64,000 bases of DNA from assembly GCF_902652985.1 (NCBI RefSeq), contig NC_047017.1:51770001-51834000 (forward strand), written 5' to 3'. The stretch's first letter is position 1. Each line of letters opens with the position of its first letter. This document shows positions 969 to 39,551 of the stretch, piece after piece. The DNA is from Pecten maximus (taxonomy: Eukaryota). Both the position numbers and the translations under genes were made by a program. The notes under the pieces are model-generated. The model searched no databases. It was not told where the DNA came from and was given only the letters and a program-made list of their open reading frames with translations.

Positions 969-1013
969 AAAGTAAAATTGATTTCGGTTGACACTTAGAA
1001 ACACAATTTCGAA

Positions 1014-3543
1014 ATGTTCAGGTTGTGGTGTCTGGCCTTACTCGCTTTGGTTTTGTTGGGACATTGTGGTAAGTTTTGTATCATGTTAGCTCTTTTCGTT
1101 AACATCAATCGAAAGCAATATATGTATGTTGTATTAATGAAACTACCACAACATTAGAAGCGTGCTCACCTTGAAATGAGGTAAGACAGGAGACTAAACA
1201 TGGGAGCTGTAAGTCTAATATTTAATACATTTTATATATTTTAAGGAAACATTAGAATGATATCTGAGTAATAGTATGCTAAATTGCATAGAAACAATGA
1301 AAGCAGAACATTTTTAAAAAAAGATATAATATATTTCCTACTATAAAATCTTGACATTTTCGTTTCCACAGCGGCCGAGGGCGATGATGGTGGTGATAGC
1401 GATGATGGCGATAGGAAAAAGAGAAGTATATCTACCCTCCACCTGCTCATTGTTTTGTTTTATAATATATCATATAAATTTAACGTACAGTAGGTAGATT
1501 TTGCACTTGTTTACACTGAAATGAATACATCAGGGTTTTTTTTTAATGAACCCCGAGCTTCTTCTATATTATGGCATTAAATTGGATACATGGTTCTAGC
1601 ATCATTGGCAGGATCCTACGAGAAAAAAACAGCAGTGTAGTGTTTCTAGAATCATTGACGAGACATCGGAGGAAGAAATAGCTGTCTAATGCAATTTCAT
1701 ATTACCATAATTGACGAGATTTAGAAGGAAAAACTAGCTATGTGAAGCAGTTTTATATTACCATCATTGACGAGATTTAGAAGGAAAAACTAGCTATGTG
1801 AAGCAGTTTTATATTACCATTATTGACGAGATTTAGATGGAAAAAAACTAGCTATGTGAAGCAGTTTTATAATACTATCTTTGAGATCTAGAAGGACGAA
1901 CTAACTTGGAATAATCAAAACGCATAGCCAAAAATCTGGCTTCATAAGCCTCATAGCGGACAGTTCCATCTCGTATACCATTCATTGTCTACTTTTTCTC
2001 ATTCATAACAATAGGATTTAAGAATATTTAGTCTCTTGCTATGAACTGCAATTAGACAATGGAATAGAAACAATAATCGTTAACCGTCATCTTAAGTAAA
2101 CCGGTTTAGTACATGTAACAGGAGAGGTGAAAATGTAGCGGCCAGACCGGGGTTCGAACCCGGGAGCTCTGAACACTAGCCGGATGCTCTACCAATTGAG
2201 CTACCTAGTCACCGATGATCGACCCAGTCCAGTCCCGCTACACACCTCCCTCCTTTTTTCCAAGTCTTCGCCCTCGAAGACACACGAGACCATTATACCA
2301 CCACCGTGGGTATTTTAGTTGGGCGCCAATTTTGTAACAGGAGAGGAGAAAATGTAGCGGCCAGAGCGGGGTTCGAACCCGGGACCTCCGAACACTAGCC
2401 GGATGCTCTACCAATTGAGCTACCTGTGATCGACCCAGTCCAGTCCCGCTACAGTACACTTATCAAATCTTTAAAAATGTTCATTTCGTATAGTTATATC
2501 TTAAATCTACTGTTATTTAACACAATGAAAATAAATTATTGATGCATACATTTCCCCTAGTATTGAGATTCTTCAAAATCAAGTTTGATGTCTTAGAAAG
2601 GCTGGCTGCTTCTGATGCCACTTATGTCACACTGTAGAACGGATTCGTAAAATCATAATTCTACAATATCATAGAAAAAAACTATTCACATATTTTTCAA
2701 ATAAGATAAATGATAAAATTTACGTTCCAGGTGGCCACATCTGTGGAATTTTAGCTCACTGGGATCTGCGATACTCGACCTGTATATGTGATACTGGATG
2801 CGGTGGGAACCCGTGGAATGAATGTCGTACGTTGATTGTTTCTTAGCAAAACACATCATACGGGATGTCAGCAATCTCAAAACAGTATCAATATGTCATT
2901 AGTTCAATGACATCACAGTTTACCTTAATGGTCGTACAATCAAGAGGTATTCCGCGTTTACGTCAGTATGGTTTTCTGTTTATTTAAAACTTGCATCATG
3001 AATAGTTTGTTTTGACCTCAAAATCCTTAGTTGACAGATAATGCAACATCTTTCCTATATTTAGGTATTCCGTTAGTACAGTACAAACATTGTTATTCAG
3101 CTGTAAATAACAAATTTCAACTTTAATCAAAGGTATTTAAAGTATATATTGAACTTATCAATCGGGATCTTGTTTTCCCCACAGGTTTACTAATACCACA
3201 ACATCCAGTGTATCACCCATTTCAGCCAGTGTATCACCCATTTCAGCCGGTTTATCATCCAGTTCAGCCGGTTTATCAACATATACAGCCTGTGTTCCAG
3301 CCATTACGCCGAGTGATTCAGCGCTTTGGCGGTGGAGGAGGAAGCAGTAGAGGAGGAGGAAGTAGCAGAGGAGGAGGAGGAAGTAGCAGAGGAGGAGGAA
3401 GTAGCAGAGGAGGAGGAGGAAGTAGCAGAGGAGGAGGAAGTAGCAGTAGAGGAGGAGGAAGTAGCAGTAGAGGAGGATATAGTAAACATGGAGGAGGAAG
3501 AAGTAGCAGAAGTGCAGAAGACAGTTACGACAGAGATGACTAA
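1014..3543 (+). CDS. Paralog A: secreted prepro-protein with mini EGF-like module, PVYHPFQ repeats and cationic GGGSSR tail (~187 aa, 4 coding exons)
   Basis: Hand-spliced exons 1014-1068 (MFRLWCLALLALVLLGHC, signal), 1372-1425 (AAEGDDGGDSDDGDRKKR), 2731-2826 (SGHICGILAHWDLRYSTCICDTGCGGNPWNEC), 3185-3543 (RLLIPQHPVYHPFQPVYHPFQPVYHPVQPVYQHIQPVFQPLRRVIQRFGGGGGSSR...RSSRSAEDSYDRDD*). All introns are GT-AG, phase 1, frame open. TATAAAT at 962; AATAAA at 3770. Confidence 0.85.
1655..1900. repeat. Intronic minisatellite, ~57-bp unit, ~4 copies
   Basis: Repeated ttgacgagatttagaaggaaaaactagctatgtgaagcagttttatattaccat. Confidence 0.85.
2114..2453 (-). mobile_element. Miniature non-autonomous LTR retrotransposon (TRIM) with tRNA-derived LTRs (Ajax/Cassandra-type design)
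   Basis: Direct repeats 2114-2242 and 2333-2453, each TG...CA; 5-bp TSD GTACA (2109-2113, 2454-2458). On the minus strand: PBS TGGCGCCCAAC (tRNA-Lys type, 2328-2318) just inside the 5' LTR, and PPT GGAAAAAAGGAGGGAGG (~2260-2245) before the 3' LTR. Each LTR contains tRNA A-box and B-box sequence (GGTAGCTCAATTGGTAGAGC...GGTTCGAACCC). Confidence 0.9.
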
Positions 3544-3882
3544 ATACAGTATACAACGGTATGGAACACATCATATCACCCAAAGAAATATACACATTAC
3601 ATACACATTGTTACATAGTATATCAAACCTTCAGATCATATCGCACTAACTCATATGATACTTTTATCTTATCGTGGTGAAAAGGACAAAAGACGACAAG
3701 CTCGGTTTATGGCTTTCCAAGTCCTAAAATCATGAATGATACAATACTCCTTATCTAATGCAAACGATAAATAAAAAATAGAACGTTTTTTTCTTTTCAA
3801 ATTGTACAGATTTTCTTTTTGTCTTAATTATACATATATGTCTTTAAACAGGTGCTATGAAGACGAAACCTACATATATATA

Positions 3883-5959: not shown

Positions 5960-6170
5960 CTCATCCATTAAAACATAACAAAATGAAGAAAAAAACAAAA
6001 CTCTCAAATAGTGATAATGCATCATTTCGAGTCAGGCTGAGCATAACACAATGGGGAACATGTAAACAATGATTCGTCATCGGAATGTGTAAATTGCTAC
6101 AATGTAGATATCCATATATGGATACATTGGGCAAAACAAACGGGCGCAACATTAACCCCCATATGTGCGG
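5960..6170 (-). mobile_element. Fragment of the same non-autonomous DNA element as 9943-10936
   Basis: Reverse complement aligns by eye to 9943-10140 (gggttaatgtt...cattccgatg...cattgtttaca...gcctgac). Confidence 0.6.
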
Positions 6171-14932: not shown

Positions 14933-17900
14933 ATGTTTGCTTTTAAAGAACTTGTGTTGTTCACACTGCTAGTCATCGTCGGTAAGTTGCCTACAAACTG
15001 CCAAATTTTATTTTTCCTTTCCAGTAATTAATCCAAGTAGAAATTGTTTTTTCGTTAGTGTATTCATAGCCATGTAGTATACACATCATACACTTAAAAA
15101 TTCAACTCTTTGATTTTTTCTTAATGCAATTTGAATAATTTTACCGATTGTTTGCAACATTTTTGCATAAATATTAATACATTCCTTTTTGTGGTATAAT
15201 GAAAAAAAATTAATTAAGCGGTACTCGCCATTCCTTATGTGTCTATGAATGCTTTGTTTCCTTATCCGTGTAATGTACACGCCATCTTATAATTGTAGCG
15301 TTGGTCTTCATTTAATGACATGTATTAAAACGTTTACACAAAATTAAGATTACCTACAAAGTGATAGCAGTAGATGATGATGTACACGTATGTGTATCCT
15401 ATAGTTGTGGTATTAGAGGTCCAAATTTGAGTTACCTAACATCAACATATATTGAAATATTATAGGTAATTATTTTTTCAATAATGACGCTACATCCTGA
15501 ATCCGTTCGGGTTTTTTTTGATGTTGTGGATATTCTTGTATGCAAAACAGGGAATTAAAAAACATATTGGATATCAATTACGTTTTATAAGCTTGACACA
15601 TATTATGTAGAATGCACACATTTCAATATAGCAAGTAACAATTATTCTAAAGTTAACTATAAAGCTTGGTTTTCCCATGATAAAAATGTATTGTTTGCTT
15701 TACAATTCAAAATTAGATATATATTTTACAGCCGTGGAATGCTCAGAGCGGGAAAAAAGAAGTAAGTATCAAATAATTTTTTGAAAGATTATAAAGAAAT
15801 TAATTTTCATTCACTTCTGTCTGAATATTTTTACACTTTTAATAAATTCGATCTTATACCACATGATAACGTAATCAATGGAGCGGTATTTTTTTATGAT
15901 AGCCACCTGCGGAGCGCATGCGCATTACGATCCTCAAAACAATTGCTGCGTCTGTAATGATGGCTGGGAAGGAGACCCCTTGGTAGCCTGTGAGAGACAA
16001 GGTGAGTCGTTATGTCGTTTGGAATTTTTAAGTGTTTATTTAAATAATTAAATTCGCCAAAACATCTTTCACAAAATAACGCAAAGCACGACACAACGTC
16101 TAGACAGGAAAGTCGAACCTAGGTACCCGATACTTTCAAGGAAAAACTGACGACTTGGAGCCAACGAGACTTGTTCCCGTTAAAGTCTTGGGATTATGGG
16201 GATATCTTATTAACAACAATGGGATCGGAATTGTATTAAGCTGAATCGACCACTAGGGTTGCCATATTGACCACATGAAAATTGAAACACATGTCATTTA
16301 GTGTCCAGGACAGATTAAGTCCTTGGATATACTTCTCGCTCATCTCTAACCGCAGTAAACTCGTTAGTAGTAAATATGAACATGCTAGATTACATACTAT
16401 CTAATCTGAACAAGTTGATAATTATTTTACTACATTACTTCAATACACCTGGCCAGGGAAATAAAAAAAAACACCATAAAACACTGTTCTGATTGGTCCA
16501 TACTATTTTACGATATCATTAAATGATCACAATTGTTATATACGTTTAACAGCGATGATTTATTCTGATATTTCTCTGATAGAAATACAGTAAAATATTT
16601 CTACATAAATGCGACCCGCTGTATATCATCTTAACAGTCCCGATCCAATGATGGTTTTAGGCGTTGGATAAAATGCTTACTTAGATTGTAAATTTATCCG
16701 AATAAACCCTGTTATTGTAACTGTAAACTCTGTCGGTTTCAATCTTTTATATTCTTTAATTGAATTATTCGGAATTCCAATCGACGACCATCTTTGGCGT
16801 TGTAACTATGCATTAATTGTTTTAGTATTTAAATGATCTCGAAAATTTCCCTCAGAACTTTATAACGATAATGTCATCAGTTTTATTAAAACAGATTAAA
16901 TCATAATGGTGTAAAATAATATTATCCAATGATTTAACAGAGGAAGAAGAAAGTAGCAACGATGAGGATGATAATGGGGAAACTGACGAAACTTCCGGTG
17001 AGTATTACTATGCCAACGTAATTGATTCATGTACTGGTCTGATCTAAATTTCAATATGAGAAAGCAAGCTACTGTTGTCTGATGCGTTAAAATAGCCATT
17101 GTTGAAAATGAAAACGAACGATCAAGGTTTCAATTATATATCTATATTCCATCATTAAACGTCATGCATTTTAGTTGCTGAGCACAACAGGATAACGATA
17201 ATTATGTCATGAGAGTAATATTTGTTTGATATTCAATAAGAAAGCAATACCTTTCATTTTAAGGAAGAATATTTAGAATATACCAAAGCGATAAAAAGAC
17301 ACCAGTAACATACTGTCTTATTCAATTGTGGTTACCTTTGACACAAGAGGACAGTGCCATTTTGACTGAACTTAACTTTACCATGTGAGAAATTTCTGTT
17401 GTTATTCGACAAGTTATGCTTCAACTATGAATGAAAAGCAAAGTAGAGATTTGTCAAAAACAACGGTTTTATCAACAATAGTGATTAAAACTTAAATTTC
17501 ACTTGTCAAAATTAAACAAAATGTTTAATGGAGTCGATGTTTATGAATCCTGGTCCCCTTTTGTATTTCGGGTTTATTTTAAAAATTACGTTCGCCTCTC
17601 AAATTCTAAACTTCGGTAAATCACGGATGCCATCTTGAATGACGTCATATGACTACCATTATTGCTCTACCATTTATTATGGTAACATTACCTAAAACAT
17701 GAACTAACATTGATCGGATCGGTTTTCTTTAGCATTTCTATCAATATAATGTAAAATAATAATTTCGATTTTAACAGAGGAAGACGAAAGTAGCAACGAT
17801 AAGGATGATAATGGGGAAAGTGACGAATCTTCTGGTGAGTGTATTTATGTACTGGTCTGATATAAATTGTCAAATTAATTGTTTGTTTTTGACTTTTTTC

Positions 17901-20900
17901 ATATAATCAATCATTATTAGCAATGCATTACATAATCAGGGATTGTAAGGTATTGCTGTGAATGTACGTGCTGAGCTGACTTCTCTAAGCGAAGGTGTTT
18001 AAGTCAACTCGTCCCGAAGTTGATGTTCGGCTGTGCGTTACCACAATCGGCGTAGTCTACACTTGGTCAAGCTCGCATTATGACGTCTTTTACGCACCCA
18101 TACCTGTGTGATCGTAGACTACACTTGCCATTGTCGGCAATATAGATATTGAGTTTATAACATTGTATATTCGGTCATCTTTCCCAATAATATTGTTATT
18201 ACCACAGTGATCATAAAGGCTTAATAAAGATGATAAAATCTTATATTTCACTGGTAAAATTTTTAATAGAGTCGCTGTTTATGAGTTTCAGAGTACTGGT
18301 GCATTTTTTGTATCTAGGGTATATTTTATAAATTTCCTACGCTTCTAAATATCTGAAGTCCGATCGATATCACCTTGGATGACGTCATTTTATATCAAAG
18401 AATTTGGTTCTACGATTTCTAGATTATCACCAATTTGCTCACAGAAAGTATTAACATTGACGGCATCGGTTTTCTTTAACACTTTCTATCAAAATAATGA
18501 AGAATAATAGTTTCTATTAATTTAACAGAAGAAGACGAAAGTAGCAACGATGACGATGCTAATGGGGAAAGTGATGAAGCATCTGGTGAGTATATTTATA
18601 CCAACATAGTTTGCTTATGTACTAGTCTGATATGAACTTTCATATGAAATTTTGGTTACCTTTGACACAAGAGGACAGTGCCATTTTGACTGAACTTAAC
18701 TTTACCATGTGAGAAATTTCTGTTGTTATTCGACAAGTTATGCTTCAAATATTAATGAAAAGCAAAGTAGCGATTTGTCAAAAACAACGGTTTTATCAAC
18801 AATAGTGATTAAAACTTAAATTTCACTTGTCAAATATAAACAAAATGTTTAATGGAGTCGATGTTTATGAATCCTGGTCCCCTTTTGTATTTCGGGTTTA
18901 TTTTAAAAATTACTTTCGCCTCTCAAATTCTAAACTTCGGTAAATCACGGATGCCATCTTGGATGATGACGTCATATGACTACCATTATTGCTCTACCAT
19001 TTATTATGGTAACATTACCTAAAAAATGAACTAACATTGATCGGATCGGTTTTCTTTAGCATTTCCATCAATATAATGTAAAATAATAATTTCGATTTTA
19101 ACAGAGGAAGACGAAAGTAGCAATGATGAGGATGATAATGGGGAAAGTGACGAATCTTCTGGTGAGTGTATTTATGTACTGGTCTGATATAAATTGTCAA
19201 ATTAATTGTTTGTTTTTGCCTTTTTTCATATAATCAATCATTATTAGCAATGCATTACATAATCAGGGATTGTAAGGTATTGCTGTGAATGTACGTGCTG
19301 AGCTGACTTCTCTAAGCGAAGGTGTTTATGTCAACTCGTCCCGAAGTTGATGTTCGGCTGTGCGTTACCACAATCGGCGTAGTCTACACTTGGTCAAGCT
19401 CGCATTATGACGTCTTTTACGCACCCATACCTGTGTGATCGTAGACTACACTTTCTATTGTCGACAATATAGATATTGAGTTTATAACATTGTATATTCG
19501 GTCATCTTTCCCAATAATATTGTTATTACCACAGTGATCATAAAGGCTTAATAAAGATGATAAAATCTTATATTTCACTGGTAAAATTTTTAATAGAGTC
19601 GCTGTTTATGAGTTTCAGAGTCCTGGTGCATTTTTGTATCTAGGGTATATTTTATAAATTTCCTACGCTTCTAAATATCTGAAGTCCGATCGATATCACC
19701 TTGGATGACGTCATTTTATATCAAAGAATTTAGTTCTACGATTTCTAGATCATCACCAATTTGCTCACAGAAAGCATTAACATTGACGGCATCGGTTTTC
19801 TTTAACACTTTCTATCAAAACAATGAAGAATAATAGTTTCTATTAATTTAACAGAAGAAGACGAAAGTAGCAACGATGACGATGATAATGGGGAAAGTGA
19901 TGAAGCATCTGGTGAGTATATTTATACCAACATAGTTTGCTTATGTACTAGTCTGATATGAACTTTCATATGAAGTATATATTTATTTTTTTCAGATTAT
20001 AAATCGTTATGATCAATATATTATATAATGAATGTTTTCCATGAGCATGCTGAAGATATTCTAGTATCATCTGGTAGCACAGTAGCTTGACAAAGCTCTG
20101 AAAATTAAGTGATATATCTAACAGATGATTACCAAATTAACAAAATTCTACTGTTACCCTGACATTGACTCTCAGATGAAGATGTTTTCTCCAAAAACCT
20201 TCCTTAAATTAAACATCACTTACATGCTAATTGGAAAACTCCAATTTCAATTTTAACATTAAGTTATTTCACAGATTTCCCGTATTTTGAAAGTATGGAT
20301 TTTCTTTCTGAAAACCTAGCATTTCTACTATGGAGTAGGTTTGAGACTGGCCAAATTGAATTCTCGAACCAAATACAAATTTTGCATTCTAAGATCCCTC
20401 CAGTTCAACATATGTTTACCAATTTTACGGTATATTTCATTTTTAGATCTTTAAACACCAATTTATATTCACTGTGTGAAATATAATACGTGAGATACCA
20501 AGTTTCTGTGGTTTGGAATTTTGTAATAGCCACAGTTGAAAATTGTAACGATCAAGGTTTCGTCATTTAAATAATTAAGTGTTATACATTTCAGTTGCTG
20601 TGCATGACAGGGTAACGATACATTATGTCATAAGAGTACAATGTGTTTAATGATAAAGAGAAAATCATTCGTATTGTTCTATACATTTTATTTCAAGGAA
20701 GAACATTTAGAATTTTTTTTAAATACCAAAACGATAAAAATGTAAAGACATCAGTAACAAAATGTTTCTTGTCTTATTCCGTTGTCGTTACCCTTGACAC
20801 AAGAAGACAGCACCATTTCCACTTCACAATGTCAGATATTTCTGTTATTATCCAGCAGGTAATGCTTCAATTATGAATAAATAGCAAAGACGTAATTGGT

Positions 20901-23900
20901 CAAAACCCAAAGTCTTATCAACCATAGCGATCGTTCAATATTCGTATATTACCACAAGGATGATAGAGGCTTAATAAGGATGATAAAATTAGTATATTTC
21001 ACTAATACAATGTAAAAACATAGTAAAATGATCAATGGAGTCGCTGTTTATGATCTTAAGAGTGCTTCTGCAACCATTTTGTATATAGGGTTTATTTTAC
21101 AATTTACTTTCAAATTCTGAAGTTCGATCAATCACGGATGCCATCTAAGATGACTTCATATAATATTACTTTGATCATTGCTCAAACATCTATTATCACA
21201 ACATTGCCTAAAAAGGTATTAACATTGATCGGATCGGTTTTCTTTAGCAGTTTCTATTGAAATAATTTAAATAATATTATCGATTTATTTAACAGAGGAA
21301 GACGAAAGTAGCAATGGTGAGGATGGTAATGGGGAAAGTGACGAAACTTCTGGTGAGTGTATTTTAGTCAACAAAGTCATCTTATGTACCGTTCTGGTAT
21401 GAACTTTAATGAAAAAATGTTGGGGTTTTTTTCAGATAATAAATCATTATAATAAATGTGCTATATAATCAGGGATTGTAAGATACTCTTATTCCACCAT
21501 AGTGATGATATAGGCTTAATAAACGTAATAAATTCATTTATTGCATTTTGTCAGTGAAATATAGAAATTTATCAAACTAATACAATTTTCACTGCAGCGA
21601 TGAGCAGTGAAAATATAAGATTTTGCTGTGAAAATATAACTTTTTCGTTTTTGACCAATCAGAGCGAACCTTTGTGTTCACCACATTGTAACTTCCCGAT
21701 TTTTCCAATCGAAGTGAAGATAGATACATTGGTTATTTTGCTGTATTTCTGAAATATTCATACTAGCTTTTGACAAAATACTAACTTACGATAGCTATTC
21801 ATGCATAGATTCTCCGACAACAGTAGAAAACGCTTTAATTGCCATGATCAGTCCTTTCAAAATGGCGCCATCAAGTTGACGTGGAGTAACGCCACAAAGA
21901 GATGACGTCATGAATTCCCGCTCTTTTTGATACTATTAAATTCGTGAAAATATAGATGTTCTGTCATACTCGTGAAATATATGTTATATTAAACGGGAAA
22001 ACATTCAATATCCTTATATCCTATATATTTTTTAATTGAGTCACTGTTTACGACTTTTAGAATCCTGTTGTCATTTTTGTATCTAGAGTTTATTTTATAA
22101 TATTTTCCCGCTTCTCAAAGTATGAAGTTCGATTAATCGCGGGTGCCATCCTGGATGACGTCATATTTTATTTAAGATCATTGCTCTACGATTTCTATAT
22201 TATCATCACTTTGCCTTCAGAACGTATTATCATTGACGGCGTCAATATTCTTTTGCATTTTCTATCAAAATAATGTTAAATAATATTATCCAATGATTTA
22301 ACAGAGGAAGATGATAGTAGTAACGCTGGTAATGATAACGGAGAAAGAGACGAATCTTCTTTTTACCAACATAGTTTACTTATGTACTGGTCTGATATGA
22401 ATTTTCATGTGAAAAATATTCTTGTTTTCAGATTATCAATCATTATTTTCAAAGTACTATCTAATCAGGGTTTTCTATTAGCATACTGAAGACATTACAG
22501 TGACGTTATGCAGCACTGTAGCTTGACCAGATTTTGAAAATTTAATGATGTAAAAGGTTACCACATAAACAAATGCCTTAAAAACATACAATTTTATTGT
22601 TACCCTGACATTGACTCCCAAATGAAGATGTTTTCTCCAAAAACCTTTGACATTAAACATTACATACATGCTGATAGGGAAACTCATATTTCAGTTAAAA
22701 CTTTAAGTTATTTCACAAATTTCCCGTGTTTTGGCAGTATCGATTTTATTCTTTCTGCAAACCTAGCTTTTCTACTTTTGGTAAGTTTGAGACTGGCCAA
22801 ATTGAAATATCGAAGCAAATAAAACTTTTGCATTCTAAACTTATGTATCCCCACTCTCTTCACTTCATCATCTATACCAATTTTGGTGTATAATTTATTT
22901 TTAGATCGTTATACACCAATTGAAAAAATGTTATATTCATTGTATGAAAATATAACACGTGAGAGACCACGCTTCTGTGGTCTGATACTTTATAACAGAC
23001 ATGGTTATCGATCGATCGAGGTTTCCAACATTTAAATATATAGTTGATATTCAATGATGAATCATTAAATGTTATACATTTAAGTTGATGAGTATGACAG
23101 GATAATGATACATTCCGTCATGCGAGTAAAACCTTTTTAATGTTCAACAGGAAACCATTCGTAATATTCTATACATATCATTTACGGAAAGAACATTTAG
23201 AAAATACCAAAGCGATAAAAAGAAATGAAGACATCAGTAACATTATGTTGTCATATTCCATTGTCTTGACACAAGAATACATTACCATTTTGACCGAACT
23301 GAACTTTACAATTTCAAACAATTCCGTTAGTTATTTTTCAAATATGAATGTGATTGGTGAAAAAAATATTGTATCAACCATAGTGATTGTGCGATATTCG
23401 TTTGAAGATTTTAAGAGTTTTGAAACCTTTTTATCAAAGGTTTATCTTTACCACGCTTCTCAAATTCTGAAGTTCGATCAAAAAATGATGCCATCTTAGA
23501 TGACGTCATATGATACTAAGGGCTATTGCTCTACAAGTTTCTTTCGTCACTTTGCCCATAGAATGTTTAGCAATTTCTATGAAACGAAATGCAAAATGAC
23601 AGTATATATATTACTTTAACAGAGGAAGATGAAAATAGCAACGATGAGAATGATAATGGGGAAAGTGACGAATCATCTGGTCAGTATATTTAGGCCAACA
23701 TAATTTTTCTGATGAACTGGTCTTATATAAATTTTATATTACACTTGTAAAAGTAGAGTCTCTGTTTATGAGTTTAAGAGTTCTTATCCCATTTTGTATC
23801 TACGGTTTATTTTATAAAGTTCTTACGCTTCGCAAATTTTTTGCTCGATCAATTTCGGATACCATATTAGATGACGTAATATTATATTGAATATATCATT

Positions 23901-26650
23901 GCTCTACGAAATAGAAATCACTTTGCCTGCAGAAAGTATTAACACTGATTGGAATGGTATTTTTTAACATTCTCTATCAATGTAAATTAATAGTATCCAT
24001 TGCTTTAACAGAGGAAGACGAAAGTAGCAATGATGAGGATGGTAATGGGGAAAGTGACGAATCTTCTGGTGAGTATGTTTATGCCATCTTAATTTAGATT
24101 AACTGGTCTGAAATAAATTTGCATATGAAACATGTTTTTTGGTGGGGTTTTTTCAGATTATAAATCATTATTATCAATACATGTATATTATATAAACAAG
24201 GTTTTCAATTAGCATACTAAGTATAAAAAAAACCATAAAATTTCATTGTTACCCTGACGTTGACTCACGTATGAAAATGTTTTCTCCAAAAACCTTTCAA
24301 ACTTTACAACATCAATTACATGCTAATGTGGAAACCTAAATTTTAGATTCAACTTCAAGTTATTTCACAAATATCCCCGTTATGACGGTATGGATTTTTT
24401 TCTGGAAACCTAAATTTTCTACTATGGGGTAGGTTTGAGACTGGCCAAATTGAAATCTCGAACCAAATGCAAACTTTGCATTCTAAAATTATGTAAACCC
24501 ACTCTCTTTATTTCATCATTCATACCAATTTTGGTGTAGATTTTATTTTTAAATCTTTATACATCAATTTATAAAGAGGCTATGTATTATATAAAACTAT
24601 AACATGACCCGGCCAGGCTTCTGTGGTCTTATACTTCATTGTTACCACGGTTGAAAATGAAAACGAACATCATCTAAATATGTATAGTCAATGATAATTT
24701 TCTTGAATATTATACATTTAATTAAATGAGTATTTAACAATAGTGATATACTCTGTCATTAGTAATACACTATTTATTCTTATGTATATAGATGTATAAT
24801 GTAATTTTTAGAAGCATAATGTTTCCTATCGTATGCTTATGTGGTAACACTTGACAGCGGGATATTTCACCTGTAAAAGCGTAATAAAATATACACCCGT
24901 TGATCAACAAAGTTATAAAAAATCTTCGTATCAATGATGTCACTCTATATAAATAGAAACTAATCAACAGTAGGCAATAATTCCTGCATGTCTGTAGTGT
25001 TTACAACCTTTAGGGCAATGTTTTGGGATGGTGTTGGGGACAGCCCTGGTGTACGCATCATGTAATTTGTGCGTCAGTGATATAAACAATAGTATCAAAT
25101 TACAAAACAACTTGCAGACTTTCATATAGGCTCCTGATAACCGACTATTCCATCACTTGCCTGTTTTAATTGATAAAAAGACATCTCTGTCAGACAAAAG
25201 GGTATCAATTATATTCTGCTGAAATAGTTTAAACCCGTAAATATTAAATATATATATGTGGGATATTCACTTGAAATAGGTGGTTAATAGTTTTTACTGT
25301 CACTACAGTGGCAGAAGGAGGAGATAGCGTGGGTAACCAAAATGGCAATGCTAATCAAGGAGAGAGCGATCCTCATCGTAAGTATACTTCTTAGGAAATT
25401 TTTGACGATATACTGGTCAGATATGATACATTTATACATAGATCTGAAAGGATAAAATGACTAGTATGAAATATGCATCAACATTTAAAGATGGTGTTAC
25501 TGAGTACGTCATCATGGTTTGAAATTAAGGTCTGACTCATATCAATGTTTAGTAAAGTCTTCGTGAATATCCTTATTTTGCATTAAGGTATTGTACGCAT
25601 ATCTGTTATAGCTTAATAATGATTGGCATGACGATTCCTACTTGTGTTACTACGTGGTACTCTCTTTACATTAGAAATAGAGAAAACCCATATTCAAACG
25701 AAACCCTCATATCGCCCGTAGGTGTTTCTTGTTTATTCAACGACACATGCCGTGAACGTTTTGGTCAAATTCTGCTGATGTCAAATGAAAGTTTAGGTCA
25801 AATCCTGGTGACGTCACCTTTTTGGATGAACACTACTGTAAATCAACAGACAACCTGCAGACGTTTTCCCACGAAAGGCTATGATGTAATGATATTGAAT
25901 ACGTTCAATTATTTGCAGCACATTTTTAAAATGCCGTTACATTTTTTCTATGATAGGCAGCTGTGGAAGTCATGCCCATTACGATGTTCAAAACGAATGC
26001 TGCGTCTGTAATGAAGGCTGGGAAGGCGACCCATCTACCGACTGTGATAAAAAAGGTCAGCTGCCTATCTATTTGTTCATTTGTATTATCATTATTTTCT
26101 ATCATTTATTTATTTCCTGTAAACGTTTAATTGGTGTATTACCGTTATTTTCTCTACATTATTCATTAACAACATCAATTCAGAACTTTGCTTGTTCTTT
26201 CAGTGACAGGAGTTGACGGGAATCAAAATGTTGGTGATAGTGAAGAAGATAGCTTTTCTCGCTGTAAGTGTTTTGATAAAACGTAATACTCAACTCATCT
26301 ATTGGGATCTGATGCGTAATACATTGTTAAGGCGCTGAATTTATATTTAAATTAATCTACATAGAAAGTAAATCCTAAGTGTAATATATAACAGATCAGG
26401 CAACTTTCTTGCTATTTCAGCATTCTTTTTAAGTGATGTTTTCATTTACATGCCATGCCCTTCATATAATCTTCTAGAGCGAAACATACGTGCACGTTTT
26501 TTCATGATTTTATGAAAATTCGTTCTTAAACATTATTAATGTCATGTTTGGATATACATTTGTACATGTAGATTTTCTGCTTATTATTGAGTTGGGATTG
26601 TACAAAAGATACACAAGATATTAATAAAACATTTTTTTTCAGATCGTTGA
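14933..26650 (+). CDS. Paralog B: secreted highly acidic (Asp/Glu/Ser) protein with two mini EGF-like modules (~289 aa, ~15 coding exons)
   Basis: Exons 14933-14981 (MFAFKELVLFTLLVIV), 15732-15761 (AVECSEREKR), 15903-16001 (TTCGAHAHYDPQNNCCVCNDGWEGDPLVACERQ). Then 57-bp acidic exons (consensus EEDESSNDEDDNGESDESS) at 16941-16997, 17778-17834, 18529-18585, 19105-19161, 19855-19911, 21296-21352, 23623-23679, 24012-24068. Then 25309-25377 (VAEGGDSVGNQNGNANQGESDPH), 25957-26055 (RSCGSHAHYDVQNECCVCNEGWEGDPSTDCDKK), 26204-26263 (VTGVDGNQNVGDSEEDSFSR), and probable last exon 26643-26650 (YR*). All GT-AG, phase 1; AATAAA at 26747. The last exon is the least certain. Confidence 0.82.
17326..19975 (+). 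repeat. Recent intragenic tandem duplication, ~1.33-kb unit x2, each carrying two acidic microexons
   Basis: ~17326-18652 is nearly identical to ~18653-19975; homologous exons are offset by 1327 and 1326 bp. Confidence 0.9.
21535..22025 (-). mobile_element. Inverted copy of the 8430-9027 repeat inside a paralog B intron
   Basis: Reverse-complement similarity (tttttgaccaatcagagcgaacc; aaacgggaaaacattcaatatcct). Confidence 0.7.
22305..22360 (+). other. Ninth acidic microexon copy that has lost its original splice donor
   Basis: tttaacag acceptor intact, reads EEDDSSNAGNDNGERDESS, but the G|GTGAGT donor is deleted; an internal in-frame G|GTAATG exists after 22328. Confidence 0.6.
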
Positions 26651-33195: not shown

Positions 33196-33805
33196 TGTTT
33201 AGTACTTTATTCACTCCCTTCAATATTTCCTCCTTTTACAATTTAACCGTATAAAACAATACGATACTGATTGAACCATGTAGTTGTAATCTCTATCCCA
33301 TCAAAGGACCTTTTATTTGTAAGTCTTTCATTTATAATGGCCATTGGTTGATACCAAATATACATACAAGTCAGAAGAAAATCGAATGACTCAAGTTTTA
33401 TTTTTAATAATTGATTGTATTTCTCATTACACACAATCTAACAGCAATTAAGGTTACTGGTGTATCTGAAAATAAAACATACAGTATTAAGAAATACGAC
33501 GATATATCAGAAATGTACGTTCTTACAATATTGTCTTTACGTTACAATTGCATGTGATTGCTCTAGATTTAGTTTTTATATTGTATATATGCATGCATAA
33601 ATGTAGAGGAAACAGACGATATTAAACATCAAACCTAACAATTGCCCTCGTCAGTCGTCATGCCCAATAACAGATATACTTGTTTATTTTGGTTTCGTGT
33701 GAAGTTCTTCATATTTTAAACTTTATTCAGTTAATGATATGTACATGTATTTTATGGAGAACATGATTAATGCCTCACCGTTATATGCTAGGGTCTTTTT
33801 TAGTA

Positions 33806-35558
33806 TTAATCCCCGCTGCTATTACTTCCGTTTTTGCTACTTTTACTTCCGCTGTTGCTACTGTTACTTCCGATCTCGCTACTTTCACTTCCGATCTCGC
33901 TACTTTCACTTTCGCTCTCGCTACTTTCACTTTCGCTACTACTGCTACTGCTGCTACTGCTACTGCTACTGCTACTGCTGCTGCTGCTGCTGCTACTACT
34001 ACTACTGCTTTCGCTGTCTTGTATCACGTCTGGCTCTGGCTGAAGGACTGGTAGTGGTTGAGCTACGGTGATTAAATCTAATGGGAAAGAATATGTAATC
34101 GATAATGAAATTAAGTACAAATTGAATTGATAATAATTGTATTTGGTTTATGATTGCAGAACAAATGTACCCATTCTTATTTGTGAAGAGTGCTCCACGA
34201 GAAATTGATATTTTCATACATTCGGATTTTACCGAAACACAACACAGAATATTATCATAGTATCCGTCAAATGGAATATGATATGAATGCACATTGTACC
34301 ATCTTGTTAAATGAGCGTTCGACTAATATTTGACATAATTAAAATGATCCACATTATCCTATTAACTCCTGGTTTTCCAAGAAAACTGCGCACTAACTTT
34401 CTCAATTGGCACCTGACATATTTGATTAATGATTCATAAACCGGTGTTCAGGAATCAAAAATGACCTTTCTGTCAAAAATGACAATAGCTATTATTAATA
34501 TAGTGAGTGATATAGCATTATCAATCCGTTTATAGACTTAAAGGGCAGCCATGAGACCTGTATATGGCATATACTGAATGGAAACTTACGACATCCAGTA
34601 TCTGGAGTTCCACTGCATCCATGGTCACATACACATGCTCCAGCATTCCAGTCATAATGAGCCAAGAATCCACATTCCACAGGAGCCCCAAAAAGGTAGC
34701 CTAAATAAACAGCAAGCTGAACATACACACGAAAATACAGTGTTTCCTTGATATGATATACTGACTGAATTAATTTTGATTTTAATGCAGATTGCTATAT
34801 CTAAAATATATAATATAACGTAGGACAAACAAAAACAAACTTGTTTCTGTTGTTAGAAACAAAATATGATTTTTTTTTTTTTATAATAAAGGAGAGGAGA
34901 CAGATTACCGCATGTAAATTAAAGCCAGCCAAATGTTGTAGTAACGAATGTAGTATACAACACGATCCGGCTGACTCCTATTTCAAATATATACTTCCAA
35001 AAATTACAAGATCTCCATAAATACCTCTCTTTTCTCTCCTCAGGTCAGCTCCATCCGCCACTGTTAAACCAATAGTTACTTTTGTAATTTGTTTTATTTC
35101 TCATTCAAAACATTATAATTTTATTAAATACTAAATGTCAATATCCATCTTTGTTCTAAAGTTCATTTACCTATTTATGGAGTTGATTTTTTCAATGTCA
35201 GCCCGTAAATTAAGCAATGGCGTCGCTGTTTGTTACATCGCTTTTCACTGGCTGTGCATCATTAAAAGTGGCATTGCCGTTTGTGTTAGCAACGAAATTA
35301 TTATGAGCTGCGCATATGTCAATAGTGTACATCATTTTATTGTATTTTTTTATATCACAAAATATTCACTGCCTATCTTATTAAGCATTATTTGATATAT
35401 AAGATCATGGTATTGTATTTAGGTGAGTCTTTATACCACTAGTTATTCATTCCTTACCTAATCAAGCTGTATTTGATATTTAAGTCAACAAATACATACT
35501 CACCCCAACATCCGACCACGACCAACGTTAGCAACGTAAGATCTCTGATCCCAAACAT
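33806..35558 (-). CDS. Paralog C: secreted prepro-protein with mini EGF-like module and poly-Ser / Ser-Glu tail (~157 aa, 4 coding exons)
   Basis: Exons 35558-35504 (MFGIRDLTLLTLVVVGCW), 35060-35025 (VADGADLRREKR), 34700-34590 (GYLFGAPVECGFLAHYDWNAGACVCDHGCSGTPDTGC), 34077-33806 (HLITVAQPLPVLQPEPDVIQDSE-S25-ESESSESESESSEIGSESSEIGSNSSNSGSKSSKNGSNSSGD*). All GT-AG, phase 1; TATA-like at ~35602-35608; AATAAA (minus strand) at 33727-33722. Confidence 0.85.
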
Positions 35559-37648
35559 CCTGTACAAATGCTATGGCTGGTCAACGGATGAGTGTACAGT
35601 ACTTATATGGTGTGACACACCTGTCTTAACGCCATAACCACACGCTACATTGCCTTTATAAAGAATGGAAAGCCGATCTTTCCGGCTATTTAGGTTTTCG
35701 TCCAGTTACATATATAAAAGTCAAATAAAGACTAATCATACATACGACTTCGTCACTAATCTTTTCCGTTTTGACGTCAAAATAAGGGACAGGTGTTACA
35801 AGTGTTAATTTCACAATGCCTTGACACGATACAGATTTACAGTGTGTTCAGTACACTACATATCTTTTGATAGTTTGATGTGTTTGAAGTTTTAAAAGTT
35901 CCCTGAGTAAGGTATTATTAAACCGAATGATTAGATTTCTAGATTTGTATTTCCTAAGTTAAAAACGTCTTGGTATAGCTAGTGATATCCCAACCATTCT
36001 TATGTGTATTACACTTGACAGACAGCTGGCTTTTACCAATTAATGATGTCATTCATTTCATTTCTAGTTATTCTTTTATTTTATGATCTATACGTTTATT
36101 AGCATGACGAAAGCCAAATTCTGCGTCAGGACTGCCACATTATCATAAGATGAAATGGCAATTAAGGGGTTCATAATCTGTGGACAACTTCATTACATGC
36201 CATCATCTGTTGCCGGAATGTAAGTAGATATACATCATCTGTTGCCGGGATGTAAGTAGATTATGCATTATATTGTTATTACGGGATGTTAGTATATACA
36301 CATTATTTGGTGATTGTGAGAGATTGGGTGAAGGAAAATTATATTGAAATGAATTACGTAATTTGGGAAACATATACATCATTATTGATAAATATCGAAT
36401 CTGGTATTAGGTTCCCTTGGGAACGGGGACCGCTATATTTAGATACCATCATCGAATTGAGGTAAAAGTATATCTTTTATATTAAATCAAAATACATGTA
36501 GATAATATAAGTACTTTTAAAGCAAGATATCACATCCATGTTATTATTGCAAGCATTCCAATGGCGAAAAAAACCCGATAAATGTTAAGTTCGTAACTTT
36601 GCTGCCGAATCCATATCACGTAAAATGGAGATACCTAAGACCTGATGAATGCCTTCCGTAGTGCCATACCACATGTGTTTTCATTGTATTCTGCACTAGA
36701 TTTTTATGCGGATTACATTGATTTGTTTTTGTTTTTGGACCCTAGTGGGTTTTTTTTCTGATGTTTACTATCTGTTCGTATCGTTTGTTTCAATACTTAT
36801 TTCCTTTATTTGTTTATTTGATTATCTATTTATTTATCTATTCTTTTTTATTTATCATTTACTTATTAATGGGAGCTATGTACAAAAAGAAATATGTTGA
36901 TGAAATCTGAATATAGTACTTATACAATACTCAGCCTGTGGACTATTTGTCTCTTCAGTTTAGCGGTCTCTCCCTTGCATATGAAACTTAGAGGTTTAAT
37001 GAGAGCTACGACGTGAAAGTCAGATTAGAATGATTCGTTGTCATACGGTGATGGAACAGACCGACATTAGAATATTGCCATTAAGAATACGGTATGATGT
37101 AATATATTCATTAATCCCCATTGTAATGTATCTCGGCGCTAGAGATCAATCCATTGGAGTATATGTACTCGGCTGCCCTGCTTTAACTGGCCTATTTTTT
37201 CTTTGTGTAACCGTTTCCTGTCTGTAGGATTGGAGTAATTTGGACAGTCCATATATAATGGTGTATTAGTACATTACTATAGTATGATAAATCTAATAAA
37301 CATTACTTTATATGTAAATACCAGAGGTCATAGGTCAAAAACAAAAACCAATATTTCGAGATATTTTTTAAGATAAACCTATTTCATGGTAGTCTGCTTC
37401 GTTCAGTCATCTGTTTTTAAATATGTTGATAACTAGGGATTATACATCATGTGTGTGTATGGTTCCACTCTTACCTCAGCATATGAATAGGAATTAAGTT
37501 GTAAATAATGGCTTTGCACTTTGATCTGAAGCATATGACAACCATTACGAAGCAATAAGGGGCGGTACGATATGCTATATACAGTAACTAAATTAGGTCT
37601 TACCTTTTACAGGATTAAGATCCACTCTGATACAAGACGTTCGCCGAC

Positions 37649-39551
37649 ATGACGCCACTTCGAAATATATTGTTTTCTTTGATCATTGCTTTTGGTAAGT
37701 TATTGTTTATTGTAATCGACCGTTACTTAACTACATTTAACCGGTATCATTTCTGTTAAAACGTTAATTGTATCAATGTTTATGAGTTTGAATACACTAA
37801 CTGAATATTTCGCATGTTTAAATTTTTATTTAAAACACGTTGACGACATGAACTTGGCCGGTTATATAGCTGGATTCTAAAAGTGTGTATTAAATAGTTT
37901 TCCTAAAGAAATAGCATACATTTTAACAATTAAATCGGTTTGATGACAATCATTTAATTCGTGAATTCAATAAATATAGATTAAATACAGCTTTCGCTGA
38001 ATGGCAACATTAGGTATTCATCTAAAGTATGTCAACACAATTTCTTATTTCAGCAGTGGAATGTGCTCTTCTAGGAAAACGAGGTTTGTGCTACCGTGTT
38101 CTGATTTATCTAAGATTAAGATACATTTGTACTTTGTCAGTAAGAACGATGTCACTTGAGTTCTAGCTTGAAATGTACATTTCATCGTTAAATAACGATA
38201 AGCTTTTATTAGTGCAGTCGTAACTAGGCGGAACTTTTCCACCAATAAAGGCGCTGAAATGATAACAATGTTAAAATATGTACGCTTTATTACATGAAAT
38301 CCAAAGTAATGAACATTTATTTTAGTTCTAGTTTGATGTTTTGAGAGCACGCTGCCTCAATGGTGGATGCATACCTCTTCATATCGAAACAGATACTTTT
38401 TGTCAAATTTCCCCATCACTATTTTCAAATCTACGCCACCGATTCTAAAAAAGCAAATAAGAATAAAGGTACCAGAGAGATATAAAAATTATTGAGATGA
38501 ATTAAATCATTAATACATTATGAATCTTTCTCACAAAAGAGACTTTTTTCGAAAATATCAAATTGGCTTTCTCATTTCATTTTTAACATATTTGCTGATG
38601 ATTATAAACAGTTTTCTTGACTACTTATTACAGACCAATGTTTTAATAAAAGTTTGACTCATTTTATTACTGAAGAATCACGATCTGTAGGAAGTAGTAG
38701 TGGAGGATACAACATTGACAGCGTTATCAGTGACAGCAGCAGTGGAGAACACGGCTGTATTCACGGTAATATAACAGTACAGTAGCGACGAGGTGCCAAC
38801 CTATCATTTCGTTATGAAATAACAAAATTTACGTCACATTTTGATAACTTTTTATACAAAAACAAATGCCTTATTCTCAACCAATAGGCCAATAATACAA
38901 TAATTATATTGTCCTTACACGTCCTAGAAGGACGAACCATCAAAACCTCAGCGTGTTGTTAATCGTTATCGCCATCAAATGAAGTGATAGTTAAAATTAG
39001 ACTTAAAATGTATTTACAGTTATCAAGTGAGGCGTTCAATACCGAGATTACAAAATGATTGTCTTAAACTAATCCGAAATTCGTTTACAGCAATCAAGTG
39101 TGGAGTTCGAGCTTATCCTCTAGGACGAATGTGTGTATGTTACCCGGAATACAAAGGCAATCCTTATACAAACTGCTATGGTAAGTAGTTAATAAACGAA
39201 AAAAACACGGACGAACGGCCATGCTTAAACAAAGATAGTGCATACACATTGCTTTCCAGAATATCATCTTTACAGCACATGTCTGTATCTAGAATGTTTC
39301 TTTTTTTCAAAATCATTCAGACAAATGTTAAACACCACTCAGTCGTATGAAAACAATAGTTCATATATCATTTGGAAACAATACTTTAAACAATACTTTA
39401 TATTTCCTGTGAAAACAATAGTTCATATATCATTTGGAAACAATTGTGTAGGTTTATGCAATAATTCTGTGCCGAAGATAACCTGTATTAAATGTAGGAA
39501 TTTTAACAAATAGTCTTACTTTCTTTTTCAGACAAGGAGAATCATGAGTAA
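37649..39551 (+). CDS. Paralog D: small secreted prepro-peptide with Ser/Gly segment and mini EGF-like module (~91 aa, 5 coding exons)
   Basis: Exons 37649-37694 (MTPLRNILFSLIIAF), 38054-38083 (AVECALLGKR, homologous to B exon 2), 38676-38765 (ESRSVGSSSGGYNIDSVISDSSSGEHGCIH; alternative in-frame acceptor at 38690), 39091-39180 (AIKCGVRAYPLGRMCVCYPEYKGNPYTNCY), 39532-39551 (DKENHE*). Phase-1 introns; AATAAA at 39605. Confidence 0.78.

Follow-up and report, generated by a model that had tools for sequence, protein, structure and literature searches.

Five mini-EGF module exons in a tandem cluster of Pecten maximus outline a candidate scallop-restricted family of small secreted proteins

The window, that is, the whole 64,000-nt stretch of Pecten maximus DNA analysed here, contains five module exons arranged in a tandem cluster, with genes A, B, E and D on the plus strand and gene C on the minus strand (Table 1). 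A preliminary description of this DNA had proposed a cluster of four genes; a profile search showed that the paralog cluster is real, but its members number five, gene E having been missed. The signal exons of A, B, C and D are 55, 49, 55 and 46 nt long, the pro exons, 54, 30, 36 and 30 nt, and the module exons, 96, 99, 111 and 90 nt, all within the ranges claimed earlier; the corresponding exons of E have 52, 69 and 99 nt. All introns of all models have GT-AG borders and, as had been stated, are in phase 1. The pro exons were said to end in KR, and this is the case for A (KKR), B and C (both EKR), and D (GKR), but not for E. The R-x-[KR]-R motif is present in the propeptides of A, B, C and of all three orthologs.

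Table 1. Features of the cluster. E exon 1, E exon 4 and D exon 5 are predicted from the sequence only.
Feature	Position	Strand	Description
A upstream region	754..1013	+	promoter-like block in common with C; core 871-912; AAAGATCGG at 889, about -125 from ATG
A exon 1	1014..1068	+	signal peptide MFRLW...GHC, 55 nt; donor gtaagt, phase 1; same exon in Argopecten ortholog P0021
A exon 2	1372..1425	+	acidic propeptide, R-K-K-R end (furin-type site), 54 nt; 68% identity to P0021 (tblastn)
A exon 3	2731..2826	+	mini-EGF module, 5 Cys, 96 nt
A exon 4	3185..3543	+	PVYHPFQP-type repeats, then GGGSSR repeats, acidic end; stop 3541-3543
B exon 1	14933..14981	+	signal peptide, 49 nt; 81% nt identity to exon 1 of Mizuhopecten LOC110466052
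B exon 2	15732..15761	+	propeptide AVECSEREKR, 30 nt; 81% nt identity to Mizuhopecten pro exon
B exon 3	15903..16001	+	mini-EGF module, CCVC type, 99 nt
B acidic array	16941..24068	+	eight 57-nt phase-1 microexons; B 3' end undefined in the model
B microexon starts	16941, 17778, 18529, 19105, 19855, 21296, 23623, 24012	+	
E exon 1 (putative, uncertain)	24792..24843	+	weak signal peptide MYNVIFRSIMFPIVCLC, 52 nt
E exon 2	25309..25377	+	pro-like (V)AEGGDSVGNQNGNANQGESDPH, 69 nt; dibasic end absent
E exon 3	25957..26055	+	fifth mini-EGF module; top profile score in the genome, E 3.5e-15
E exon 4	26204..26286	+	short acidic tail VTGVDGNQNVGDSEEDSFSRCKCFDKT*, provided the donor at 26264 is unused
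C exon 4	33700..34077	-	tail and 3'UTR; stop 33806-33808
C exon 3	34590..34700	-	mini-EGF module, 111 nt, 5 Cys
C exon 2	35025..35060	-	propeptide, R-E-K-R end, 36 nt
C exon 1	35504..35638	-	5'UTR and signal peptide; ATG at 35558, MFGIRDL...; contigs in 4 runs reach 35563-35638
C upstream region	35640..35818	-	block in common with A at 35658-35699; AAAGATCGG at 35681
D exon 1	37649..37694	+	signal peptide MTPLRNILFSLIIAF, 46 nt
D exon 2	38054..38083	+	propeptide AVECALLGKR, 30 nt; P4 Arg absent
D exon 3	38676..38765	+	Ser/Gly-rich, 30 residues, one Cys, 90 nt; weak acceptor; before the module
D exon 4	39091..39180	+	mini-EGF module, 4 Cys
D exon 5	39532..39551	+	DKENHE and stop

The modules were described by the pattern C-G-x2-A-x(6-8)-C-x-C-x2-[GE]-x2-G-[NDT]-P-x3-C. 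In a search of the HMM type that had been suggested, a profile of the five modules was run over the 918-Mb genome, and strong matches were produced by these five alone (E 1e-11 to 4e-15); the next-best matches (E at least 0.003) were ordinary six-cysteine EGF exons on other chromosomes. Given this search, the resemblance within the cluster is far beyond chance.

The module is an EGF-like unit where the positions of Cys2, Cys4, Cys5 and Cys6 are kept, Cys1 and Cys3 are absent, the place of Cys3 being occupied by Tyr or Trp, and one additional cysteine, the fifth, is present. The Pfam search of the modules yielded no EGF model at or above the cut-off. In the AF2 model of P0015, the Mizuhopecten ortholog of D, both modules have pLDDT of 81-91 and consist of four short strands each, and the linker is disordered. 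The top rows of the structural search were all EGF domains, none of them significant, and the ESM Atlas neighbours of the module belong to Dumpy/EGF_3 clusters. The A module is 76% identical to that of Argopecten (pN 0.16, pS 0.81); the values for B and D compared to Mizuhopecten are 0.29 and 0.76, and 0.23 and 0.57, respectively. In these comparisons pN is well below pS, and purifying selection acts on the modules.

In protein searches, the only homologs of the family came from two scallops, Argopecten and Mizuhopecten, in agreement with the proposed lineage-specific cluster. They are XP_069119227 (Argopecten irradians) and XP_021377979/78 and XP_021377970 (Mizuhopecten yessoensis), and their exon structure is identical. 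Synteny, which takes in a flanking EF-hand gene, links A, B and D to orthologs that follow the same exon grammar. The system had been called undescribed, and no study describing this family was found in the literature searched, but the orthologs are already annotated in RefSeq under the label "uncharacterized". In Mizuhopecten, both the B ortholog and the D ortholog carry two modules: the former has a Gly/Ser linker in place of the acidic array, and the latter, a 95-residue acidic tail and the additional module. Thus, tails differ even between orthologs, and together with the phase-1 exons this bears out the notion of a common disulfide module combined with interchangeable regions. The tail of A, with a 39-nt repeat at 3334-3510 (TRF), shows 42% identity, with indels, to the tail of its Argopecten ortholog, which is far less repetitive.

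The RNA evidence consists of assembled contigs; the runs bearing C are coded X1-X4 and come from one study. Spliced reads had been expected over the predicted junctions, and for C all three were found: the joint 35060|35504 in spliced contigs of all four runs, the joint 34699/34700|35024/35025 in X1-X4, and the joint 34077|34590, with exon 4 contigs spanning 33700-33897 and 34020-34077. Hence, transcription and splicing of C follow the model exactly. The TTTATAAAG box lies approximately 25-30 nt upstream of the outermost RNA contig end of C. The upstream regions of A and C share a block (871-912 and 35658-35699, 81% identity over 42 nt by blastn), and in the MAFFT alignment the two regions have long common blocks at equal distances from the ATG; therefore, A and C are probably co-expressed. 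RNA-contig support is confined to C and, at low depth, to D, where the contigs cross exon borders unspliced.

The acidic part of B is encoded by the microexon array, each unit yielding about EEDESSNDEDDNGESDESS. A further unit, at 22305-22361, is decayed and no longer has its donor, and the latest exon-plus-intron duplication (17312-18648 and 18636-19974) retains 97.7% identity. In our reading, such duplication is one mode of growth of the family; another is gain or loss of modules, the first module having been lost in D and a second one being present in the orthologs.

Genes D and E raise the question of how many members are functional. One could suppose that A, B and C alone are live, that D is what remains of a decaying gene with two modules, and that E is a pseudo-exon or belongs to B as its second module, so that the cluster would comprise two or three genes plus relics. 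The treatment of D as an ordinary member indeed did not hold, since it lacks the first module, as well as most of the low-complexity exon, of its Mizuhopecten ortholog, and the available contigs are unspliced: one of them (38708-38938) reads through the exon 3 donor, both borders of exon 4 are crossed, and the contigs continue into a 32-bp satellite. The weak acceptor of exon 3 and the propeptide without P4 Arg point in the same direction. On the other hand, open frames, GT-AG borders and phase are kept in all D exons, and contigs cannot show the absence of a spliced form. The D module retains pN below pS, and the promoter-proximal region is conserved (37487-37581, 75% identity with the sequence preceding Mizuhopecten LOC110466046). 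The module most resembles the second, C-terminal one of its Mizuhopecten ortholog (59% amino acid and 78% nucleotide identity), and the D pro exon matches AVECAPREKR of P0015 (LOC110466046; tblastx). As for E, its weak signal exon, the lack of KR, a possible in-frame joining to the last B microexon and the two-module structure of the B and D orthologs fit the reduced count. However, the E module has the best score in the genome, and its Mizuhopecten counterpart is situated 10 kb downstream of the B ortholog, past the stop codon of the latter. The B and E modules share 79% nucleotide identity, and the start of E exon 2 is similar to the A pro exon (AEGDDGGDS). E may stand as a gene of its own or supply B with a second module, and we consider the reading with relics rather unlikely.

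The composition of the tails agrees with what had been described, except that the low-complexity part of D precedes the module. Mature A has the net charge of +8 and contains 11 Pro, 8 His, 7 Tyr, 35 Gly and the GGGSSR repeats; B has the charge of -85, arising from the eight microexons; C, with 47 Ser in 127 residues, -15; and E, -7. The tail of C starts with a QP-rich segment followed by a run of 26 Ser and then by SE and S/N/G/K repeats. In other invertebrates, chimeric antimicrobial peptides such as penaeidins, arasins and hyastatin join Pro/Gly-rich and Cys-rich parts, and the family could likewise produce processed bioactive or host-defence peptides and not a matrix, if the convertase frees a disulfide-knotted peptide with the cationic Pro/His/Gly-rich extension of A, the acidic paralogs being neutralising partners or having drifted. 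The signal peptide, anionic pro-piece, dibasic site and Cys-rich peptide form a layout typical of secreted bioactive peptides, A combines the positive charge with a Cys knot, and rapid divergence of tails between species is common in immune effectors. Nevertheless, this explanation seems improbable, as the strongly anionic B, C and E are unlike such peptides, the Argopecten A tail is much less repetitive, and no similarity to known antimicrobial families was found in Pfam or protein searches.

For the family as a whole we infer a matrix, biomineral or adhesive function. Asp/Glu/Ser repeats of extreme acidity and poly-Ser tracts are familiar chiefly from mineral-associated and adhesive proteins. 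They speak against another extracellular role tolerant of hypervariable disorder, such as that of egg or sperm coat, mucus or larval settlement proteins instead of shell or byssus. The lineage restriction and the fast-evolving low-complexity regions would suit such a role, the runs expressing C carry codes in place of tissue names, and oocytes and larvae are among the sources of the RNA sets published for P. maximus (PMC7191990); with nothing specific in its favour, we regard it as very unlikely.

We give about even chances to a tandem family of five paralogs restricted to scallops (Pectinidae), encoding small secreted pro-proteins with a joint role in a matrix, as had been proposed. As modelled, each gene comprises, in phase-1 exons, a signal peptide, a short propeptide, one truncated EGF-like module and a disordered low-complexity region. 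After removal of the signal peptide, a furin-type convertase would cut at the dibasic site and free the module with its tail. The module may fold into a double beta-hairpin with two disulfides, and the one thiol left unpaired could take part in cross-linking or covalent dimerisation. In B and C, the Ser-x-Glu-rich and poly-Ser tails may be phosphorylated by Golgi kinases of the Fam20C type; Fam20C-like loci are present in the P. maximus genome. The polyanionic B and C, the polycationic A and the short members would then cooperate as components of an extracellular matrix, the candidates being the shell organic matrix, the periostracum and the byssal secretion. Overall, the preliminary observation is confirmed with the above corrections, and its interpretation as a whole is partly supported.

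Among known systems, the module shares with the EGF_3/Dumpy-type EGF (C-x-C-x2-G-[FYW]-x-G-[DN]-P-x3-C) the C-terminal half-motif, the CG-x-[NH]A-x start, the encoding of one module per phase-1 exon and the predicted double beta-hairpin. Six-cysteine EGF exons on the P. maximus contigs C6 and C15, which rank next in the profile search, have CGxHAxC...CxCxxGFxG[DN]PxxxCERK in common with it. The differences are the absence of Cys1 and Cys3, and hence of the first EGF disulfide, the added fifth Cys, and the occurrence once per protein (twice in some orthologs) and not in long arrays.

The bivalve shell-matrix EGFL/EGFZP proteins of the Gigasin-2 type, encoded by tandem clusters in pteriomorph bivalves, P. 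maximus among them, and in some cases having furin sites, are similarly secreted mollusc proteins with EGF-like modules, but in them a tandem pair of complete EGF-like domains precedes a ZP or ZP-like domain (PMC9290575). The scallop family lacks any ZP-like part; its single truncated module stands between an N-terminal propeptide and a low-complexity region, as a rule a tail. The byssal 4C-repeat and EGF-like proteins of Chlamys farreri, whose four-cysteine units are proposed to form disulfides and cross-link the byssus, are also scallop-specific, secreted and Cys-rich; as described, they differ in having multiple 4C repeats (PMC9168380).

The best non-scallop matches to the module profile come from bacterial metagenomes (Solobacterium MAG MBR2829499.1 and MBQ6532997.1, and one JGI protein). 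These repeats (CG-x-[NH]AH...C-V-C-D-x-G-x-E-G-D-P-x3-C) have four cysteines, with Cys1 and Cys3 missing as in the scallop module, and also the AHWD motif, but are situated in tandem in larger proteins that lack the propeptide and the low-complexity tail; convergence, common ancestry and transfer are candidate readings of this likeness.

Finally, the cluster had been called SCPP-like. The vertebrate SCPP genes form a tandem cluster of small secreted members, acidic Ser-x-Glu-rich and Pro/Gln-rich, with turnover of low-complexity regions via repeat and exon duplication; they have no disulfide module, their introns are in phase 0, their ancestor is SPARC-like 1, and they occur only in vertebrates. 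The scallop cluster is also tandem, has both acidic and Pro/Gln-rich members and shows quick low-complexity turnover, and the comparison stands as to the style of the cluster but not as to membership: because its introns are in phase 1, its common unit is an unrelated EGF derivative, and scallops are not vertebrates, the likeness is one of analogy only.

Module exons were located by a six-frame pattern scan of the window, which has a GC content of ~33-39% and zero N, and the gene models were rebuilt by script after reading the flanks. The scan yielded five exons encoding the module, a truncated EGF-like unit, so that the gene count of four in the preliminary description does not hold, and a fifth member, E, was added. 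At every exon border of the models the GT-AG rule is observed. The proposed phase 1 of the introns proved to be true for every intron, and the proposed exon length ranges fit the rebuilt models as well.

Module pattern matches and rebuilt exons of the five mini-EGF genes (window coordinates; gene C is listed in the direction of transcription)
Gene	Strand	Module pattern match (six-frame scan)	Rebuilt exons
A	+	2781-2825	1014-1068, 1372-1425, 2731-2826, 3185-3543
B	+	15947-15991	14933-14981, 15732-15761, 15903-16001, then eight 57-nt microexons within 16941-24068
C	minus	34591-34635	35558-35504, 35060-35025, 34700-34590, 34077-33806
D	+	39132-39176	37649-37694, 38054-38083, 38676-38765, 39091-39180, 39532-39551
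E	+	26001-26045	24792-24843 (putative), 25309-25377, 25957-26055, 26204-26286

In the alignment of the five modules, the positions C, G, A, C, C, G, P and C are invariant. We searched the five-module profile against the entire assembly (918,306,378 bases, 3,983 contigs), and genome-wide the strong scores (E 1e-11 to 3.5e-15) were limited to these five modules. The next matches, with E of at least 0.003, were ordinary six-Cys EGF exons clustered on two other contigs, C6 and C15. As the five matches are situated inside 38 kb of a 918-Mb genome, their proximity is not due to chance. A composition-based scan for additional exons of E and for a 3' exon of B gave nothing convincing.

The EGF-like domain has six conserved Cys, paired C1-C3, C2-C4 and C5-C6. 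Set against six-Cys EGF exons from elsewhere in this genome, such as CSGRKCGEHAICLDNRCVCVTGFQGDPYIKCERK, the module retains Cys2, Cys4, Cys5 and Cys6 together with the G-x-x-G-[DN]-P turn; Cys1 is missing, and the position of Cys3 is taken by Tyr or Trp. Judged by this residue pattern, the module is an EGF derivative minus the first disulfide. A, B, C and E have a fifth, non-canonical Cys, which forms CCVC in B and E and replaces the aromatic residue of G-[FYW]-x-G in A and C. Mature A, B, C and D contain five Cys each, hence one unpaired thiol per molecule is likely.

Formally, the module is not an EGF domain, as only four positions of the six-Cys definition of the Pfam EGF clan are invariant. 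The best Pfam result, EGF_Teneurin, was obtained for the E module only, with 16.9 bits versus the cut-off of 24.3, and neither the modules of A, B, C and D nor the full-length orthologs had any Pfam match above the cut-off. AlphaFold2, run on the family alignment, predicted both modules of the Mizuhopecten protein P0015 with pLDDT 81-91 and four short strands each, and a disordered linker between them. The top Foldseek rows were nearly all EGF domains, none of them significant (E > 2); the best VIA-align match, a NELL1 EGF domain (Z 2.8, 32 residues, rmsd 2.3), was not significant either, and no usable match came from the ESM Atlas feature search. The next-best matches in the genome share the pattern CGxHAxC...CxCxxGFxG[DN]PxxxCERK with the module, and the introns are in phase 1. 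Thus, though outside the formal EGF definition with its six Cys and Pfam threshold, the module clearly derives, by its sequence pattern, from EGF exons. Large clusters of one-EGF-per-exon genes, six-Cys and of the same G[DN]P type, are found in G000:C6:24.99-25.29 Mb and G000:C15:8.45-8.79 Mb, and this gene family probably gave rise to the module.

Tandem four-Cys repeats in proteins from Solobacterium metagenome bins also match the module, including the AHWD motif. In P0006 and P0014 (Solobacterium MAG) and in P0005 and P0016 (bacterial or metagenomic), the repeats have the form CG-x-x-AH[WY]D...CVCD-x-G-x-EGDP-x3-C, with Cys1 and Cys3 lost likewise. Thus, the module type is not unique to scallops, whereas the gene architecture is.

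Homology searches with the spliced models were performed exon by exon. The word-index protein search with the A tail (the low-complexity disordered region) returned only an unrelated Gly/Ser-rich protein and is uninformative, as low complexity swamped the search; the E module within its open frame had zero candidates, and the family alignment retrieved nothing beyond the proteins it was built from. An exhaustive HMM search based on the module profile, close to a check suggested in the preliminary description, recovered mainly multi-EGF proteins and, in addition, three small ones of the same architecture, all from scallops and annotated as 'uncharacterized protein': XP_069119227.1 of Argopecten irradians (P0021), XP_021377979.1 and XP_021377978.1 of Mizuhopecten yessoensis (P0011 and P0056, LOC110466052), and XP_021377970.1 of the same species (P0015, LOC110466046). 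Their loci (L032, L033 and L031) share the exon grammar of the cluster, that is, signal exon, pro (propeptide) exon with a KR or RR end, module, and low-complexity region; both Mizuhopecten proteins have a second module at the C-terminus. The same search found this architecture in no non-scallop homolog, consistent with the initial suggestion of a lineage-restricted family, as the architecture occurs in P. maximus, Argopecten and Mizuhopecten. In the literature searched, queries with accessions, LOC numbers and sequence motifs brought up no paper naming these loci or their motifs.

By synteny, the counterpart of A is the Argopecten gene, that of B is LOC110466052, with 81% nucleotide identity in the signal and pro exons, and that of D is LOC110466046, as seen in the upstream region, the pro exon and the module. 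The counterpart of the E module is a third Mizuhopecten module located 10 kb past the stop codon of LOC110466052 (L033:23146-23238; NEDP02005560.1, ~443.2 kb). It lies outside the two annotated proteins retrieved and has one Cys replaced by Arg, and may belong to an unannotated or decaying E-like gene. In both species, the cluster is followed by an EF-hand gene of opposite orientation (46.2-48.8 kb of the window, minus strand), and this conserved neighbor anchors the synteny; several segments of window 46200-48800 (minus) have 71-91% nucleotide identity to the EF-hand gene flanking the Mizuhopecten D ortholog. Hence, the cluster is older than the split of Pecten and Mizuhopecten, and A is older than the split from Argopecten.

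Reads were searched for 33700-39600, covering genes C and D, in Logan contigs of four runs from one 2015 study, the run type being presumed RNA ('RNA?'); 9-12% of the words of this segment were present in each run. In all four runs, one contig per run joins 35504 to 35060, 35024/5 to 34699/700, and 34590 to 34077; the ends are GT..AG when read on the minus strand, and the joints coincide exactly with the three predicted introns of C. The tail and 3'UTR of C are covered by separate contigs, and the RNA 5' limit of C is at 35638. The coverage of D (depth 2-3) is unbroken from 38708 past 39600, and the contigs read unspliced through the exon 3 donor and both borders of the module exon; exons 1 and 2 of D had zero contigs in the four runs over 33700-39600. 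Thus, the spliced form of D has no support in these contigs, which by their nature cannot show absence. Of the junctions proposed initially, the three of C are seen in RNA, and those of D at the exon 3 donor and the module exon are crossed unspliced. By member, one gene is confirmed by RNA (C) and three by syntenic orthologs (A, B and D).

A 32-bp satellite of ~86 copies with 89% matches lies directly downstream of D, at 39702-42459; it accounts for the strong GC skew at 40-42 kb, and RNA-like contigs of low depth from around D seem to enter it. Two direct copies inside intron 2 of A (2114-2242 and 2333-2453) are 90% identical and tRNA-like or SINE-like. Other tandem arrays, at 49067-50404 (39/154 bp), 62597-63476 (155 bp) and 9432-9942 (33/99 bp), are seemingly unrelated to the family.

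The unspliced contigs of D could be explained if the cluster were partly dead, D being a relic and E either a pseudo-exon or a portion of B; we consider this rather unlikely. The pN/pS values of the modules are 0.16/0.81 for A versus Argopecten, 0.29/0.76 for B and 0.23/0.57 for D versus Mizuhopecten, and 0.20/0.36 for B versus E; as pN is below pS, the modules are constrained. The tails are unconstrained. The A tail and that of its ortholog are 42% identical, with indels; in Mizuhopecten, the place of the B acidic array is taken by a Gly/Ser linker; and the 30-residue Ser/Gly piece of D corresponds to a 95-residue Ser/Asp/Asn/Glu exon and an additional first module in the same species. The acidic domain of B is made of duplicated exon-plus-intron units, the youngest pair being 97.7% identical over 1,340 bp. 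A ninth copy of the microexon, at 22305-22361, keeps the acceptor and the open frame, but its GT donor is gone, which makes it a dead microexon within the array.

Two subtypes can be distinguished. In A and C, the signal exon measures 55 nt, the pro exon starts with A-[AD/E]-G and the tail with [RH]-L-[LI]...QP, and both genes have a common upstream block at an equal distance from the ATG. B and D have 30-nt 'AVEC...KR' pro exons and two-module orthologs, and E mixes features of both subtypes. E could be the second module of B, as joining 24068 to 25309 stays in frame, yet a separate gene is the somewhat more probable variant. The derivation of C as an inversion-derived chimera of the lost front half of D was considered and is unnecessary, as the promoter, signal, pro exon and tail start of C are A-like.

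Taken together, we conclude that the five genes form a real scallop-specific family, in which a degenerate EGF anchor is combined with interchangeable disordered regions, and we hold the description as a gene family to be very probably correct.

In all models, the small predicted proteins start with an N-terminal hydrophobic leader. The pro exon, initially described as ending in KR, does so in A (RKKR), B (REKR), C (REKR) and D (LGKR), but not in E (DPHR). At the pro/module boundary, the ends of A, B and C conform to the furin-type R-x-[KR]-R, as do those of the orthologs (RKKR in Argopecten; RERR and REKR in Mizuhopecten), while D and E lack the motif. The chemically extreme and differing tails noticed at the outset were evident in the mature models, with net charges of +8 (A), -85 (B), -15 (C), -7 (E) and -2 (D), and 47 Ser among the 127 residues of C. 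Fam20C-type motifs are present in C (39 S-x-[E/S]) and B (seven strict S-x-E within exons, and junction-spanning ones), and the genome has two Fam20C-like loci above the Pfam cut-off.

The following order of events may be envisaged. The small proteins would be secreted, and a furin-type convertase would cut off the propeptide; the module would then fold as a two-disulfide hairpin pair, leaving one thiol free to pair covalently or to cross-link. The genome-encoded Fam20C-type kinases would phosphorylate the Ser-x-Glu and poly-Ser tracts, and oppositely charged members would act jointly as an extracellular matrix. The promoter block common to A and C suggests that a cationic and a polyanionic member are expressed together. 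Peptides processed for host defence or signalling would suit A but neither B nor C, and we regard this as improbable; another extracellular role, in a gamete coat, mucus or larval settlement, seems very unlikely. A matrix function is a tentative reading, a little short of an even chance, and for the family description and matrix function combined the chances are about even. The fullest version is unlikely as a whole: a scallop-invented charge-complementary matrix kit, where one promoter type would co-express polycationic A and poly-phosphoserine C, along with ultra-acidic B, all thiol-tethered via the degenerate EGF knot into a disulfide-cross-linked coacervate or mineral-binding phase of shell or byssus, convergent with SCPP and with the polyphosphoserine/cationic cements of tube worms, and evolving by phase-1 exon swaps.

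If the matrix reading is true, this compact locus would be a tractable natural experiment in building biomaterial proteins, as a single family keeps reusing one small folded anchor and exchanges the functional disordered region, the types being cationic Pro/His/Tyr with RGG-like, Asp/Glu/Ser, poly-Ser, and Gly/Ser. It would also supply a set of candidates, specific to scallops, for work on foliated-calcite shell or byssus. The birth of a disordered region is directly datable in B from its microexon-plus-intron duplications. Regardless of the function, the locus demonstrates that ORF-based views can miss taxonomically restricted secreted genes, and documents both a degenerate four-Cys EGF variant absent from Pfam and module gain or loss between orthologs of two scallop genera.

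The vertebrate SCPP family has phase-0 introns throughout, descends from SPARC-like 1, and has no Cys-rich domain. The scallop genes, on the contrary, have phase-1 introns and a conserved Cys module, and their host is a bivalve. Hence, the genes are not members of the SCPP family, and the SCPP-like cluster proposed initially is only an analogy. EGFL/EGFZP proteins of the bivalve shell matrix combine a signal peptide with a tandem pair of EGF-like domains and a ZP or ZP-like domain (PMC9290575), whereas each scallop protein has a single truncated module and a low-complexity tail; as a ZP-like region and Pfam matches are both lacking, membership in this group is ruled out. Compared by their published description, the Chlamys farreri byssal proteins with '4C-repeat' units (PMC9168380) are the most intriguing of the possible relatives.
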